Shown here one piece after another: positions 6,531 to 41,764 of a stretch of 41,764 nt of DNA. Each line of letters starts with the position of its first letter. Within the stretch, counting starts at the first letter, position 1. The notes beneath the pieces are model-generated. The model saw only the letters and a list, made by a program, of their open reading frames with translations. It made no database searches and was not told the origin of the DNA. Position numbers and translations under genes: made by a program. This stretch comes from Amoeboaphelidium protococcarum X5 (taxonomy: Eukaryota > Fungi > Aphelidiomycota), in NCBI GenBank assembly GCA_023515725.1, contig JALDTO010000135.1, forward strand, positions 188,648 to 230,411. The letters run 5' to 3'.

Positions 6531-6581
6531 TGAAACATTTATTAATTTTCACAGTACATCAGAAAAGTAGTGCAAAGTGAA

Positions 6582-6597
6582 GGTGTTTAAAAACACC
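6582..6597 (-). promoter_or_regulatory. Histone 3' UTR stem-loop (H3 copy 1)
   Basis: GGTGTT-TTTA-AACACC on the minus strand, 40 nt after the H3 stop. Confidence 0.75.
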
Positions 6598-6637
6598 ATT
6601 TTACATTCAATAAATGAGATGATAAGAATCAAAGAGT

Positions 6638-7752
<1,115 letters not shown>

Positions 7753-7787
7753 ATACTCTCACTTCGATGTTTCTATTATCGCACAAT

Positions 7788-7803
7788 GGTGTTTTTAAAC
7801 ACC
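7788..7803 (+). promoter_or_regulatory. Histone 3' UTR stem-loop (H4 copy 1)
   Basis: AAT-GGTGTT-TTTA-AACACC-TTCA, 35 nt after the H4 stop. Confidence 0.75.
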
Positions 7804-7861
7804 TTCAAATGTTCAGCTCTATTAACTGAGTTTAATTTGAAAATTTGCATTTACTATTATT

Positions 7862-13290: not shown

Positions 13291-13420
13291 TGTTGCTCAA
13301 GTATAAGGCAATGTTCAACAATACTGAAGCTAAAGAAAAGAATGTAAAGATACTATAGTACTGCAAGATAAACAAGAAATATATTCAAATAAACTCAGTT
13401 AATAGAGCTGAACATTTGAA

Positions 13421-13436
13421 GGTGTTTAAAAACACC
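13421..13436 (-). promoter_or_regulatory. Histone 3' UTR stem-loop (H4 copy 2)
   Basis: GGTGTTTTTAAACACC on the minus strand after the H4 stop. Confidence 0.75.
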
Positions 13437-13471
13437 ATTGTGCGATAATAGAAACATCGAAGTGAGAGTAT

Positions 13472-13870
<399 letters not shown>

Positions 13871-14178
13871 TTAAGCGTTTCGTTCCGTCGCACAAACTCG
13901 GCCAGTTGTTTCCCGTTTCACTCCTGCAACGGCCGTTCACCAGTGTAAACACTGTGCAAGCCTCCCGAGAAACACGACTGTGGCCGCGCTGTTTGAGGCT
14001 TCTGAAACGGAAAGAGGAACTGGCACGGCTAAAACGCTCGCTTCGTCAGTTTGAATGACCACGGACAGTGTCTCAAGCGATAAAAGCCGCCCGTCGCCTC
14101 GTTCGTTTCTCTTCTCCTCTTTGCAGTTTTAATTATAATCCTTTTACTTACTCGCACAAATTCTAAAGACATTTCAAG

Positions 14179-14586
<408 letters not shown>

Positions 14587-14626
14587 ACTCTTTGATTCTT
14601 ATCATCTCATTTATTGAATGTAAAAT

Positions 14627-14642
14627 GGTGTTTTTAAACACC
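14627..14642 (+). promoter_or_regulatory. Histone 3' UTR stem-loop (H3 copy 2)
   Basis: AAAAT-GGTGTT-TTTA-AACACC-TTCA. Confidence 0.75.
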
Positions 14643-14848
14643 TTCACTTTGCACTACTTTTCTGATGTACTGTGAAATGAAATTTCATATGTGCTCATTT
14701 GGACACTGTTCTAAAGTTATAGAATATGTTGTTAAAGCTGGGCACTAGAGCAAATGTCTTTATGTAAATCATCTAGCATTAAGATTAAAGTTAGGTGAGC
14801 AATAAGAGACTACATTTTATTGCTATACACTTTTTCATAAGCTTTCAC

Positions 14849-19070: not shown

Positions 19071-19103
19071 AAAACAAATGTATTTCTATCACAGCTAAAC
19101 ATC
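19071..19103 (+). repeat. 33-bp direct repeat, left copy (right copy at 20043-20075)
   Basis: AAAACAAATGTATTTCTATCACAGCTAAACATC occurs at both positions. Confidence 0.92.
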
Positions 19104-20014
19104 TTTAAAATTCCGACATCGTGTGGAGCGCCAAAATTTTCAAAGACTAAGTGATCGGAAGAGAATGATGATTTCGTTAAATAGAGTGATGATTAGTAGC
19201 AAGAATACTGCTTTATAAAAGTATACACTATTGGTCATATATCCATTATAGTATGGGTTATTTCATAAGCGCCAATCAACGTTAAGCACCAAAATAGTAT
19301 CACTGTGCAACTTCTTTAACAATTTATCAAATGACTACATTTTCCCCCAATGTGACGACGTGTAGCAACACTCTCATCAAAATAAAAGACATTTTCAAGC
19401 CACTGATCAAAATGCCCAAGCAGGTCCGTTTCAGCGATACTGTTTCTGAACATCTGATTGAATAACGCGTAATCTCTCGCGCCATCTCCTCTAATCTTGT
19501 TTCAACACATAGCAAGATGATGAACATTGAGAATTCTTATTTAAAGAAACAGGTTGAGAGCTTGGAATTACTGGTCAAAAGTTTGCAAGGGTAGGCTATG
19601 GCCACCCAGAAGATGACATATGAATAAGTAATGGCTTTACAAAGCCAGCTGGAAAGTAGCAAGGCGTATATTGCCCATCTGGAGCATAAGGTGGCCTCTG
19701 TGGAAGATGAGAAGGGCGTACAGAGTCCTGCTACTGAAAGTACGGGCCACATGAGCCTCGATAGTAAATGATATATGGATTATTAACGTCATTTATTCCA
19801 TTTTAAGGTGAGATTGTCAGCAGCTGATCGAGACGCGACTGAAATTGCTGCCTCTCAAACATTTCACGCCAAATCTCGTGTTTATGGCGTTACGGATTGT
19901 AATGAGAACTGATGCAAATATATAGTTCAATTACAATATTAATGTTCGATTGAAATTAATATGTTATCCAAAAGTTATATTTTCTAACTACGAGCTCAGC
20001 CACATCGAGTTTAA
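19101..20014 (+). repeat. Segmental duplicate of about 26952-28101
   Basis: Near-identical over 19101-19771 at an offset of 7851; the 3' part is more diverged and has indels. Confidence 0.92.
19331..19771 (+). CDS. Hypothetical 146-aa coiled-coil protein with a KQVRF (RVxF-like) motif, copy 1
   Basis: ATG-to-TGA frame with TAR=Gln: MTTFSPNV...PKQVRFSD...LKKQVESLELLVKSLQ...; frame conserved in copy 2. Confidence 0.7.
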
Positions 20015-25158: not shown

Positions 25159-26970
25159 TCACTAAATGTTCCAGAGTTATCGAAAGGCTAGCTATATGTA
25201 TGGTGTAAATACATTTTTGATGGCCACATTGACAATCTCCTGCATGTCTTCTTGATTATTAGATGAAGAGGAAGAAGATGATTACTCCACGTTAGTAGCT
25301 CCAATCTTCTCCAACGATTACTGTAACGAACGCTGCATGGAGGAATGCAACTTTACAAAGAGCAAACTTCTTATCGCATTAAATAAGACCAAGTAATCAT
25401 TACTAAGGGCGGCCAGCACGGGAAACTGCTAGAGCATATCAGCACCACTTGACTTGAAATTAATAGCCGTCAATGAACATTATTCACACGATTCCTTCAA
25501 TAGTTCTAAATTCAAATTATTACCACCAGCACCACTCTGCGCTGCAACTGTAAAGTTTTTATAGCCAAATAAACTCACAAACTCTGAATACTTGGCCACA
25601 ATGACATCGAGATTCTAATTGAACAACTGCAGAATCTTGTCATAATATAAAGGCACGAATAACCATCTGGCGTCAAATCCTTTTCGACTGAGCGCCACTC
25701 CAAAATGCATGGATTAAGTCAATGATTGAGATATAATGGCAAAGCTATCGGCATTATCCAATAAAGTCTTTAGCTCAGTGCAAATTACATCCCGCAGAAG
25801 ATGATGCAAGAATAGACTCAGTGCACTCTCAGGATCTTTCAGAATAGAGTCGTCATTTAGATTAGAGTGATAACCATCATCATCATCATCCTCGTGTGTC
25901 TACTTGCCATCTTTAATTGATTAAGATTAGGAAGTAATTGAAATCTAAGTAAATATCGCCATGTAAACACTAATGATATCTAACGTAAATGATCTACAGA
26001 AATCTATAAACTGTTTTAGCACCTTAGACTCTGAACTTTAATGCATAGAAATAGAACTAGCAGGAGATCTCACAGATTATCCCGAATTAGATTTCTGATC
26101 AGTGCCACCTTGTTACTATTATCCTTGGTCTCCATTGGTCTAAGGAATATCAGAGCTTAGAGATTATTAAACTTGTTCCATTTTTAATTTTTACCATTAT
26201 ATTTTAAAGAAGCTTAGACGCGCCTTGAGATAGGTGGTGTGGACATATTCCTAATGAACACCATTCAGCTTGAGTTATCGAACACTTGACAAGTAATTTA
26301 CGCATCTAATGACTTGCTTAAGACTGAGGTCTTCTTTAGATAGCTCAACCTATAACAGAGAGGAGAATTCGGCCAAAAAATTAATCAAACCTTATTTTAA
26401 CTGAACTTGGAATACTTGAATGGTAGGATACTTGGTCAATAGAGCACAATACTACTGCGCGCATCGAATAAATTAATCATACTATTAACTTGACATCAAC
26501 GCTCGCAATTCTGATTCTAAATTCAACACTGACTTAACACTAATAAAGTTCTCAGAGACAAATGTACAATTCCGTAGCTGAGAGGATATCTTATTCATTG
26601 ATTCCAAGTCGTGACTACAGAGTTAGAATGACAGGTCGGCATTGGTTGAATGTGAACTTAGTAAAGATGCATTCTACAATGTTACTTCAATATTATAAAT
26701 AATGTCGTCAACCAAAAAAGTAATATTTACTTATTAAAATTTCTGTAAATATGTCTAGACTTCGACATAGTTGTGCAATTGAGCTTTTAATGACTTGTGT
26801 AGTTGTTACTTGTGTTCGCCGGTACTGAGAGCAAGCTCCGTCTCAATACTTTCCAATTCTTGTAGAGTGCAAGAACTCAACTCCCTCTCTATGAACTTCT
26901 CATACTATTCAATATCAATATCTTATAAACGAGATTTTAATGCGAGTGATAATCTTTAAAATTCCGACAT
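25159..26970 (-). CDS. COG8: Conserved oligomeric Golgi complex subunit 8 (Dor1 family)
   Basis: QSMHFGVALSRKGFDARWLF and LQQFPVLAALSNDYL..FNAIR resemble COG8 motifs (MYFGLSFSRVGADFR; LLDFPPLA..N...FNDLR). Confidence 0.75.
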
Positions 26971-28101
26971 CGTGTGGAGCGCCAAAATTTTCAAAGACAA
27001 AGTGATCGGAAGAGAATGATGATTTCGTTAAATAGAGTGATGATTAGTAGCAAGAATACTGCTTTATAAAAGTATACACTATTGGTCATATATCCATTAT
27101 AGTATGGGTTATTTCATAAGCGCCAATCAATATTAAGCACCAAAATAGTATCACTGTGCAACTTCTTTAACAATTTATCAAATGACTACATTTTCCCCCA
27201 ATGTGACGACGTGTAGCAACACTCTCATCAAAATAAAAGACATTTTCAAGCCACTGATCAAAATGCCCAAGCAGGTCCGTTTCAGCGATACTGTTTCTGA
27301 ACATCTGATTGAATAACGCGTAATCTCTCGCGCCATCTCCTCTAATCTTGTTTCAACACATAGCAAGATGATGAACATTGAGAATTCTTATTTAAAGAAA
27401 CAGGTTGAGAGCTTGGAATTACTGGTCAAAAGTTTGCAAGGGTAGGCTATGGCCACCCAGAAGATGACATATGAATAAGTAATGGCTTTACAAAGCCAGC
27501 TGGAAAGTAGCAAGGCGTATATTGCCCATCTGGAGCATAAGGTGGCCTCTCAAGAAGAAGAGAAGGGCGTACAGAGTCCTGCTACTGAAAGTACGGGCCA
27601 CATGAGCCTCGATAGTAAATGATTTATGAATAATTAACTTCATTTATCAATTTAATCTTGCTTTTATTTCTTTCTCTTTTGATTCTGTTTACATCACCTT
27701 TTAACGCGACTCCATCGTAAAGTGAAATTGTCAGCCTCTGATAGAGACGATGTGGTGAACATAAGTCGTTAGATTAAGGGGCTTAATTAAGTTTGATCTA
27801 TTTATTTCTTTGTATGTCGTTCAAGATCATCCTTTCTGAAAAGTGATCAATAATATCAAATATATATCAGTTGTCACTTACTCTATCTCACCTTATATTC
27901 GACATACATTATAGACGCGACCGAAACTGCATCCCATCCTCTCAAACATTTCACGCCAAATCTCGTGTTTATGGCTTTACGGATTGAAATAAGAACTGAA
28001 GCGAATATATAGTTCAATCACAATATTAATGTTCGATTGAAATAAATATGTTATCCACAAGTTATATTTTCTAACTACGAGCTCAGTCACATCGAGTTTA
28101 A
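26952..28101 (+). repeat. Probable donor copy of the segmental duplication
   Basis: Matches 19101-20014 and contains extra sequence at about 27655-27720 and 27750-27912. Confidence 0.9.
27182..27622 (+). CDS. Hypothetical 146-aa coiled-coil protein, copy 2
   Basis: Same ORF as 19331-19771; differs at VASVEDEK versus VASQEEEK. Confidence 0.7.
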
Positions 28102-39096: not shown

Positions 39097-39597
39097 TCAT
39101 AATGGACATGTAAAAGATGGCGGCATTGGTTCTTAACCCATTGAAACTCTGTAGCAAACCACTGTAAAATCTAAACAGATATCCATTTTCGCGTCAAGAT
39201 CCGCTCCATAGCATTCGCTGCATTGATTATAAGTTCTGCGCATGCACATCTCATTAGTAGTCATGTTAGCACCAGGAGGGGCAATTGGCTTAGGCATTGA
39301 GTCACCAAAAGGACGCCTGGGTGTGCCAACTTGACACTCGGCAGACGAGCCCTCGCACCTGAAGCGGTAAGGCCATTCTTCTATGCCTTGAGACGCTCTC
39401 TGACATTGATCCGCGTATGGTTCACACACTTATTACAGCCAATCTAAATCTCCTTTGATGAATTGAGTGCATTCTTGGTAGGTTTCAAGCATACATTCAT
39501 CGTAAAGGCTATTTCCACCAGTGTTGCCAGCCCAACCTGAAATCTGACTTTAACACGATGAAGCTATAACAGCTAAAATTACAATGCTAAAATTCAT
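39097..39597 (-). CDS. Secreted Cys-rich protein, paralog A (166 aa)
   Basis: Signal-peptide-like MNFSIVILAVIASSCQS and 12 further Cys; colinear with 40960-41460. Confidence 0.85.
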
Positions 39598-40959
39598 TTT
39601 AATTGTTATTTGAAATTAAAAATGGGAAATAACGGATTACAGAAATATGAACATGAGTAATCATTATGAGCTCAAGCGAAGCATCTGATATTTCAATTGG
39701 TAGTGTGATAATCGAAAGATCAATTTATTGGTCAAGCATGTGATACACAGCGTACACACACGACCATCACATTACTATTAGTGTCACGATGTAATAAAAT
39801 TCATTATATCATATTGTAGTTACAAGATGTTATAGCCAAAAAGTGTTTAAAAGATAAGCTCCTCGCTGTGTCAGATGTCCTTAAATGTATATCCTGTTTC
39901 CACAAAGTGTCATTCTGACCACCGACGCGATAAAAAATCAGTATCTTGAGTAGCACTCCGCACGGTCCGGTCTACCGGTCTCAAAGTGAAGCCAGCTCCA
40001 TAAATCAATGTTATTATCAGCTTTTAATAGTGTAATCAAGATTTTTAAAAGCTCCCTCATGTTTCATAATCTAATACTCAGCGTGGCGCAAGATCAGCAT
40101 CTACTCGTGTTTAACGACAGAACGAACATATAGTGGCGTCATCCGTTTCAAGTTGATTGAGCTCTTGTTTATCATTTTATTTGTTTCTAAACTCGTATTT
40201 AAATCTTTCGTCGATAACTCATTATTGAACTATGCGAAATTACGGTACTTTATTGCAGTATTTTACGCGTTAAGTCTTAATTAAATGGCAATGCTGAGAT
40301 TTCTATTGGTCTGGTATGATTTGGTCTCCTACCAAAAATGCAGTCTGCGCTGGATCGTGGCGAGTGCTAATCTTGAGTTAAGCCGAGAGATTATGTCATT
40401 CAATGAAATGTAATATCGAATGATTGACTTTGGCGCTCCGCATTCATGTATGCGACCTGGTGTGCAAAGATGAAAATAAGAGTTCAAGCAGACTCAAATT
40501 TACACAATCGGCCATTTATCTTTGTGATCTGATGTGAATTGAAACTTGAGGAGGATTATCAACATGATTGAAGTAGCGCTCCTGAGCGTGGAAATTCTAA
40601 TTGGGGGTCATCTATTATATACCGAGATACTTTTGCGATTTACTAAGGTTCAGACAGACTGCATAACACTTGATCTATTTCATTATCTTCTTTGCTGCAG
40701 TATACAATATATGTAAGTTAAAAACTCAACATCTTTCAGCTGGGGAATGTGAAACTGCTAGACTCTTAAGCACACCATAAAGATTTTGTTGAAAGCATGG
40801 AAAATTGATATATTTGAGAAATTATAACCTTTAGCTACGTCATTCAATATAGTATGGGCAGTTCAAAGATTATCAGCGATGGAAACTAGTATGTACTTTC
40901 ACACAAGTGTCAACGTTAATTTACGTGAAATCAATAATGGGCACCATTCATAGTCAATT

Positions 40960-41460
40960 TCATCTAAGACATGAGAAAGGGGACGGCATAGGCTGTTTCC
41001 CATATGAAACATCCACACAAATTTGGAAATATGGCCAACAATACTGGTCTTTCAACTCGTATTACCCGTCGTAACACGTGTTACATGGGCCGAAGGACCG
41101 GCTCAAGCATACTTCATAATTAGTCATGTTAGCACCAGGAGGGGCAATTGCCTTAGGCCTTGAGTCACCAGAAGGAGGCCTAGGTGTGCCAACTTGACAG
41201 TCGGCAGACGAACCCTCGCACCTGAAACGTTGAGGCCACTGTCCCGAGCCTTGAGAAGCTCTCTGGCACTGGTCAGCGTAAGGTTCACATTATGACACAA
41301 TAGCATTTACATTTCCTCTGTAAAATTGAGCGCATTCTTGGTAGGTTTCAGACATACACTGATTGTAAAGACTACTTTCACCAGTGTTGCTACCCCAACC
41401 TGAACGCTGACCCTAACACGATGAAGCTATAGCAGCCAAAATTACAATGCTTAAGTTCAT
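40960..41460 (-). CDS. Secreted Cys-rich protein, paralog B (166 aa)
   Basis: MNLSIVILAAIASSCQG...; same length and Cys spacing as paralog A. The upstream non-coding DNA is also homologous. Confidence 0.85.
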
Positions 41461-41764
41461 TTAATTACTGCTAATATCGAAATTAAAGTACGATTAGGAG
41501 AATATAAATTGTTTACAATGAGCCTTTAGGGAAGTCGAGATATACACAATAGGTGGTGTGACACGAGCAGATCAATTTTATAGGTCAAGCATGTAATACA
41601 ATGCGTACAAACGATAATCACAATACTCTTAGTGTCACAATGTGTTAAAAATCCAAAAATATTAATTTGTAGTTACAAGATGCTATATCCAAAACTTATC
41701 TAAAATATAGGCTTCTCGCTGTGGCAGGTGTCCTTATGTCTATCATGTTTCCTCAAATAGTATT

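Follow-up and report, generated by a model that had tools for sequence, protein, structure and literature searches.

A candidate SLBP-binding stem-loop and an abutting second hairpin behind the core histone genes of the aphelid Amoeboaphelidium protococcarum

Does an aphelid, a parasite of algae that belongs to the lineage sister to Fungi, keep the stem-loop and the stem-loop-binding protein (SLBP) of animal histone mRNAs, and if so, what else stands at the 3′ ends of its histone genes? The question is raised by a divergent pair of H3 and H4 genes in the window (by which we mean the whole stretch of DNA that was analysed, 41 764 nt of Amoeboaphelidium protococcarum X5), both of which carry the same hairpin in their 3′ UTRs. 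To our knowledge, the textbook view is that the SLBP/stem-loop pathway has been lost in fungi. A recent preprint (Zhao, Bond and Ni Leathlobhair, bioRxiv 16 Oct 2026, doi 10.64898/2026.10.14.759114), which describes both orthologues of SLBP and stem-loops from Cryptomycota, Chytridiomycota and Blastocladiomycota, overturned this view for Rozella, chytrids and Blastocladiomycota; with the aphelid, the one deep branch left beside Fungi joins them. Aphelids are not mentioned in the main text of that preprint (doi 10.64898/2026.10.14.759114) and may be in its data set, since NCBI files them under Fungi.

SLBP and a stem-loop are thus already known from neighbouring lineages, and the aphelid is a new lineage for them; what goes beyond published work is the combination, described below, of the stem-loop with an adjoining hairpin and a histone-specific motif in one module. 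The aphelid presents an unusually clean case: a single invariant stem-loop stands on all 16 core histone genes, SLBP is encoded by two genes, and what lies downstream is a defined module. It poses the question by what route histone 3′ ends arise in a genome that has SLBP and the stem-loop but no detectable U7.

The H3–H4 pair and its genome

The genome analysed comprises 23.6 Mb in 346 contigs, and the window has a GC content of ~40%; a size of 24.7 Mb in 258 scaffolds, with 40.5% GC, is given for the A. protococcarum assembly (PMC10608142). Most loci occur as diverged homeolog pairs (C135/C156, for example), and the two SLBP genes are ~86% identical to each other. The H3 gene of the window has in-frame TAG at the canonical Gln positions Q5, Q85 and Q93 and ends in TGA, and A. 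protococcarum is an aphelid known to read UAR as Gln (PMC5304391). A fungal-related genome, which an earlier reading of the window made from its letters alone (the sequence-only reading) had proposed, is thereby borne out, both by TAG as Gln and by the identity of the organism. Under this code, lists of standard-code ORFs overlook most genes of the window.

An exact search of the window placed the 23-mer that holds the hairpin at four positions, two on each strand (Table 1), at a distance of 32 nt from the H4 stop (7750–7752) and of 37 nt from the H3 stop (6638–6640), and found no match in 100 dinucleotide-preserving shuffles, even with up to three mismatches. MFE folding gives a 6-bp stem with the loop UUUA (−6.5 kcal/mol, z = −2.7), and coordinates and fold together confirm the stems of 6 bp with a 4-nt loop that the sequence-only reading had located. 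That reading had also counted four sites; the element is indeed exact at all four, but only two of them are independent, namely those in the H3 and the H4 3′ UTR, because the H3–H4 pair is a perfect inverted duplication (1291 nt, 100% complementary) that spans the whole of the divergent pair. Elsewhere in the window, dispersed direct repeats with 95–99% identity lie ~8 kb apart (19101–19400 and 26952–27251; 19851–20014 and 27938–28101), and the end of the window (39238–41743) consists of a tandem unit of ~1.86 kb with 80–85% identity.

Table 1. Positions of the histone genes, hairpins and duplication arms in the window, and of the SLBP genes in the genome
Feature	Position	Strand	Remarks
H4 gene	7441–7752	+	103 aa, TGA stop
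H4 3′ UTR stem-loop with flanks (23-mer)	7785–7807	+	GGTGTT-TTTA-AACACC at 7788–7803; Histone3 17.8 bits, in register
H4 second hairpin	7804–7841	+	TTCAAAT 7804–7810 with ATTTGAA 7835–7841; inner 5-bp stem
H3 gene	6638–7045	−	135 aa, three in-frame TAG at canonical Gln positions, TGA stop
H3 3′ UTR stem-loop with flanks (23-mer)	6578–6600	−	Stem-loop 6582–6597; Histone3 13.3 bits
H3 second hairpin	6548–6581	−	TTCAC 6577–6581 with GTGAA 6548–6552; compensatory variant of TTCAA/TTGAA
Second H4 gene	13472–13783	−	Identical copy
Second H4 copy, 3′ end	13384–13439	−	23-mer 13417–13439; stem-loop 13421–13436; second hairpin 13414–13420 with 13384–13390
Second H3 gene	14179–14586	+	Identical copy
Second H3 copy, 3′ end	14624–14676	+	23-mer 14624–14646; stem-loop 14627–14642; second hairpin 14643–14647 with 14672–14676
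Inverted duplication, arm 1	6547–7837		Arm 2, 13387–14677; 1291 nt, perfect
SLBP gene L005	C179:126632–129835		PF15247; RNA-binding domain at L005:1381–1743, minus strand, TAG read as Gln
SLBP gene L006	C249:682828–686031		PF15247

Several peculiarities of the histone genes themselves were recorded. The H3 of the window (6638–7045, minus strand) has one alanine fewer between K23 and K27 and a Thr in place of the usual Ala. For the exact H2B and H4 proteins the only record is in GCA_023515745.1, and a second H2B isoform has no database record. In one H2A copy (L017:2389–2880, plus strand, on C206), ~41 aa of the histone fold are duplicated in tandem and in frame, which makes a frame of 211 aa as against 130 aa; damage to the copy or an error of assembly may be the cause. 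The C-terminal SQEM motif of H2A (L019:1567–1935, minus strand, and other copies) is legible only with TAG read as Gln. Neither an H2A.Z-type gene, sought with PF16211, nor a clearly distinct H3 variant was detected in the genome-wide search with PF00125 and PF16211, which was six-frame and exon-wise and had limited power; the histone copies that it did find are canonical H2A, H2B, H3 and H4. The remaining PF00125 matches are NF-YB/NF-YC and NC2-type histone-fold factors, which are without the hairpin.

The stem-loop across the genome and its putative binding protein

A genome-wide search for the exact 16-nt hairpin gave 16 sites, as compared with 0 for the reversed control. All 16 hairpins are in sense orientation and are confined to core histone 3′ ends, lying 34–40 nt past the TGA stop of an H2A, H2B, H3 or H4 gene; with two mismatches allowed, 11 extra sites appeared against 12 in the control, which is noise. 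The occurrences are independent in that the 16 genome-wide copies sit behind four histone classes whose 3′ UTRs are otherwise unrelated, yet have an identical 23-mer in common. Moreover, the sister assembly GCA_023515745.1 has the same element on H2A, H2B, H3 and H4, with a sole change at loop position 2 (UUUA to UCUA), a tolerant position; the variant retains the diagnostic U1 and U3 of the loop. A metagenome scan with a 22-mer gave 0 matches. Considering that the four window copies collapse to two, and that many of the genomic copies are homeologs or recent duplicates, one could suspect a chance likeness or an artefact of gene duplication or assembly. The identical 23-mer in four classes with unrelated 3′ UTRs, and the count of zero both in the shuffles and in the reversed control, speak against this suspicion, to which we give next to no weight; the genome-wide hairpin counts, the sense placement and the second assembly effectively refute it.

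According to the sequence-only reading, the other histone loci should be inspected for the same hairpin; the genome search found it at H2A and H2B, whereas the H1 genes (on C155 and C146, with a lysine-rich tail) have no stem-loop within 400 nt of the stop. This is one departure from the metazoan system, in which H1 genes have a stem-loop.

Comparison with the Rfam family of the animal histone stem-loop (Histone3, RF00032) gave a mixed outcome. At the gathering threshold nothing was found in the window. Under relaxed thresholds, the Histone3 model ranked first at all four classes, with the stem-loop in register, but the scores (H2A 24.4, H2B 18.8, H4 17.8 and H3 13.3 bits) are all below the gathering threshold of 34, so that the scan proposed by the sequence-only reading agrees with it in placement and falls short in score. 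The metazoan-trained Histone3 model is described as having limited sensitivity outside animals (doi 10.64898/2026.10.14.759114). In the genome-wide RF00032 scan, scores were computed for only 75 of 4188 candidates, and the true sites escaped it; its four matches, L001–L004, are sub-threshold and were rejected, and of the two with an upstream gene read, neither stands behind a histone gene.

Base by base, the likeness to the metazoan element and its SLBP system is close where the preprint places the diagnostic positions (doi 10.64898/2026.10.14.759114): the aphelid stem-loop (GGUGUU-UUUA-AACACC) has G-C as its second stem pair, U in the first and third places of the loop, and a loop-closing U-A pair. 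Further features in common are the 6-bp stem with a 4-nt loop, the G-C pair at stem position 1, an A-rich 5′ flank, the placement ~35 nt past the stop, the presence behind all four core classes and a cognate SLBP gene. The two elements differ in the middle of the stem, which reads U-A, G-C, U-A in the aphelid and C-G, U-A, C-G in animals, and in their flanks. The 5′ flank is (C/U)AAAAU or CACAAU, A-rich with U rather than A beside the stem, as compared with animal CCAAA, and the 3′ flank is UUCA(A/C) rather than ACCCA, with CA alone in common. Since the stem is invariant across copies, it yields no covariation evidence of its own. The aphelid also differs from the metazoan system in being without an AAAGAG-type histone downstream element (HDE) and without a detectable U7, and in having a second hairpin that adjoins the stem-loop.

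A putative cognate protein is encoded twice. The domain model PF15247 (SLBP_RNA_bind) matched two loci, which score 95.3 and 93.4 bits where 27 is the cut-off and cover 68 of 70 positions, and had 0 matches in 14 control genomes. The ORFs are at least 608 aa each, run off the locus and are rich in recoded Gln, and the domain lies towards their C-terminus. A TAG within the domain was the reason for searching its two stop-free halves separately, and both match the SLBP structures from Drosophila (4TUW) and human (4L8R), so that the search for an SLBP homologue suggested by the sequence-only reading succeeded at two genes. The conserved motifs are RQKQIDxGKNT, TP(N/D)K, K/R-R before W, and LH; aligned to 4TUW and 4L8R they read QRQKQIDIGKNT, TPDK, SKRNW and LHMFD, and they deviate from RRQKQIxYGKNT, TPNK, SRR-x-W and LH in that Ile replaces the Tyr before GKNT, and Asp the Asn of TPNK. 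In the 4L8R structure, the Arg of the basic pair reads the second G of the stem, and both this Arg and the second G-C pair of the stem are retained in the aphelid. An LSM-domain match lies ~22–25 kb from each of the two SLBP genes.

On these grounds of sequence and placement, we regard the hairpin as most likely the SLBP-binding 3′ stem-loop of aphelid core histone mRNAs. The stem-loop would be transcribed as part of the 3′ UTR, ~35 nt past the stop, and the proteins encoded by the two SLBP genes would bind it, by which the 3′-end formation, stability and translation of histone mRNA would be tied to a dedicated factor. The earlier suggestion that SLBP-type histone control, with a variant stem, may persist in this lineage is supported by the hairpins on 16 of 16 core histone genes and by the two SLBP genes.

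It could be held instead that the element acts at the level of DNA, as a palindromic transcription-factor or terminator site at histone genes that is unrelated to SLBP. The sequence is indeed nearly palindromic as DNA, and the TTCAA…TTGAA pair that follows it (see below) is an inverted repeat as well. Yet the asymmetric loop and flanks are sense-oriented in 16 of 16 copies and in four classes, the geometry and the diagnostic positions fit an SLBP ligand, and without such a ligand the two SLBP genes would lack a target; we consider a DNA-level palindrome very unlikely.

The SLBP-bound stem-loop, our preferred reading, would place the aphelid alongside the early-diverging fungi (Rozella allomycis, Paramicrosporidium, chytrids and Blastocladiomycota), which combine SLBP with a stem-loop in the same way. 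Rozella has the stem-loop behind all four core histones, ~26 nt past the stop (doi 10.64898/2026.10.14.759114). In contrast to the aphelid stem-loop, which is identical in 16 copies, the fungal candidates are variable and often found on subsets of genes, and an abutting second hairpin and TTGAAAYTAT, to which we now turn, are not described in the preprint.

The second hairpin and the downstream motif

The 5–7 nt directly 3′ of the stem-loop are the reverse complement of a segment 26–31 nt downstream, a pairing that the sequence-only reading had overlooked. The pairs of this second helix are TTCAA/TTGAA in H2A and H2B, TTCAAAT/ATTTGAA in H4 and TTCAC/GTGAA in H3. In all four classes MFE folding returns the stem-loop followed by an abutting second hairpin (z = −2.1 to −3.7), with −15.9 kcal/mol and z = −3.7 for the two hairpins of H4 and z = −3.2 for those of H3. 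In shuffles, the chance of such a second helix is 0.03–0.08 per class and ~8e-6 jointly. Across the distinct copies of both assemblies, a helix of at least 5 bp is present in 20 of 25 (one H2A homeolog reaching 10 bp) and weakened in the other 5. A literature search found no paper on a second hairpin after a histone stem-loop.

Helix 2, in addition, has compensatory changes. The formal pair count was made on H2A, H2B and H3 only, the four-class alignment misplacing the 3′ strand of H4; helix 2 is 85% paired, and the whole two-helix structure 92.5%, as against 30–53% with slid partners. The covariation score of the H2A, H2B and H3 alignment was equalled in 1 of 500 shuffles. By compensatory change, AU has become CG in the H3 class and GC in one H2B copy, the former being a single evolutionary event that was inherited by several copies.

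A longer motif, (G)TTGAAAYTAT, contains the 3′ strand of helix 2 in H2A and H2B; TTGAAAYTAT itself, or a (G/T)TGAAA variant of it, stands 26–33 nt past the stem. Between H2B sub-lineages that differ in both flanks, TTGAAAYTAT stands out as an island of identity. Further, within each class conservation collapses directly past the downstream element, and it is there that the inverted duplication of the window ends, on both sides; bounds of the duplication at the second hairpins suggest gene conversion, or selection limited by a functional unit. The spacer of the inverted duplication measures 5.5 kb, and identity between its arms stops at both ends on the 3′ strand of the second hairpins. Genome-wide, the downstream 11-mer is not enriched (92 occurrences vs 150 in the control), and it is therefore not a general genomic signal.

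The 3′ module that we propose would accordingly consist, in its order along the mRNA, of the stem-loop, a second hairpin that starts from the very next nucleotide, and a downstream motif that would serve as the 3′ strand of this hairpin. The sequence-only reading had noticed no clear purine-rich downstream element; this holds as regards an animal-type AAAGAG and needs to be amended in that a conserved, histone-specific element, TTGAAAYTAT or its variant, does exist. The motif is found at H1 as well: the homeologous H1 loci L048 and L049 (C155:554147 and C146:552481) have GTTGAAACTAT ~118 nt past the stop, the same motif as behind the H2A and H2B stem-loops, here without a stem-loop and without a pairing partner.

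As in the U7 snRNP/HDE system, then, a short, conserved and histone-specific element stands at a fixed distance downstream of the stem-loop. Unlike the HDE, the aphelid element is TTGAAAYTAT and not the purine-rich AAAGAG, and it pairs in cis with the 3′ flank of the stem-loop; nor was a U7 RNA detected in the aphelid.

Candidate routes to the histone 3′ end

The searches for U7 were the following. With the Rfam model RF00066, a weak search, the best match reached 17.7 bits, which is the level of the bacterial control and hence noise. The pattern probes combined the complement of the TTGAAAYTAT motif with an Sm site, the U7 Sm site consensus being RUUUNUCYNG (PMC5054213). With an animal-type Sm site 8 matches were obtained vs 19 in the control, and with a general Sm consensus 28 vs 31 in the control, both being likewise weak searches. 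As to Lsm10 and Lsm11, LSM-domain matches numbered 31, or ~16 homeolog pairs, vs 15 expected, the weakest pairs being C249:661706/C179:153279 and C146:84775/C264:1718124. For Rozella, LSM11 and a U7-like RNA are recorded; overall, factors of the U7 system are sparse, and in some transcripts poly(A) follows the stem-loop, for which an intermediate state, termed ‘SLBP-SL-PAS’, has been proposed in Cryptomycota and Blastocladiomycota (doi 10.64898/2026.10.14.759114).

We infer SLBP binding and a role of the module in directing 3′-end formation, and two accounts of that role can be compared. In the first, the stem-loop is kept and bound by SLBP, but the mRNAs are cleaved and adenylated further downstream, as in the ‘SLBP-SL-PAS’ intermediate. 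The motif and the second hairpin would then be part of a cleavage or termination site and not of a U7-type mechanism. We hold this to be possible, if on the whole unlikely. In agreement with it, the preprint reports a stem-loop followed by a poly(A) tail in Allomyces H2A and Catenaria H4, U7 was not found, and AATAAA-like strings lie past some copies (e.g. H3 copy 1 and H2B). Moreover, the occurrence of the downstream motif at H1 without a stem-loop suggests that the motif may act alone. Against it, the downstream 11-mer does not behave as a general 3′-end signal, given its counts in genome and control, and AATAAA is missing from several copies.

In the second account, the histone pre-mRNA would carry its own ‘guide’ in cis, and the tandem double hairpin would replace or gate the U7–HDE duplex; we give this idea little credence. 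In its strict form, the duplex of the 3′ flank of the stem-loop with the motif replaces the U7–HDE duplex, so that SLBP is needed and a guide RNA is not, a form that we consider equally doubtful. The start of helix 2 at the first nucleotide past the stem-loop, common to all four classes, and its compensatory changes argue for such a cis duplex, as does the failure to detect U7. However, the predicted cleavage site would lie inside the duplex, and CPSF73-type nucleases do not cut duplex. Conservation of the motif over 10 nt, where the helix needs 5, and its presence at H1 without a pairing partner both suggest a trans-acting reader. In addition, the U7 searches are weak, and a few loci do join ATTTCAAC with an Sm-like site.

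If the cis duplex were nevertheless to operate, it would amount to a U7-independent, SLBP-dependent route to histone 3′ ends, possibly an intermediate between the animal pathway and fungal polyadenylation. For what is missing from the mechanism, the second hairpin and TTGAAAYTAT are specific candidates that can be mutated.

As to the individual matches of the pattern search, which overall was at chance, the 8-nt anti-motif ATTTCAAC is followed 1 nt later by an Sm-like site at C136:223195–223213, C244:94291–94309, C212:374408–374426, C192:857003, C314:13738 and C211:294226, partly on homeologous contigs.
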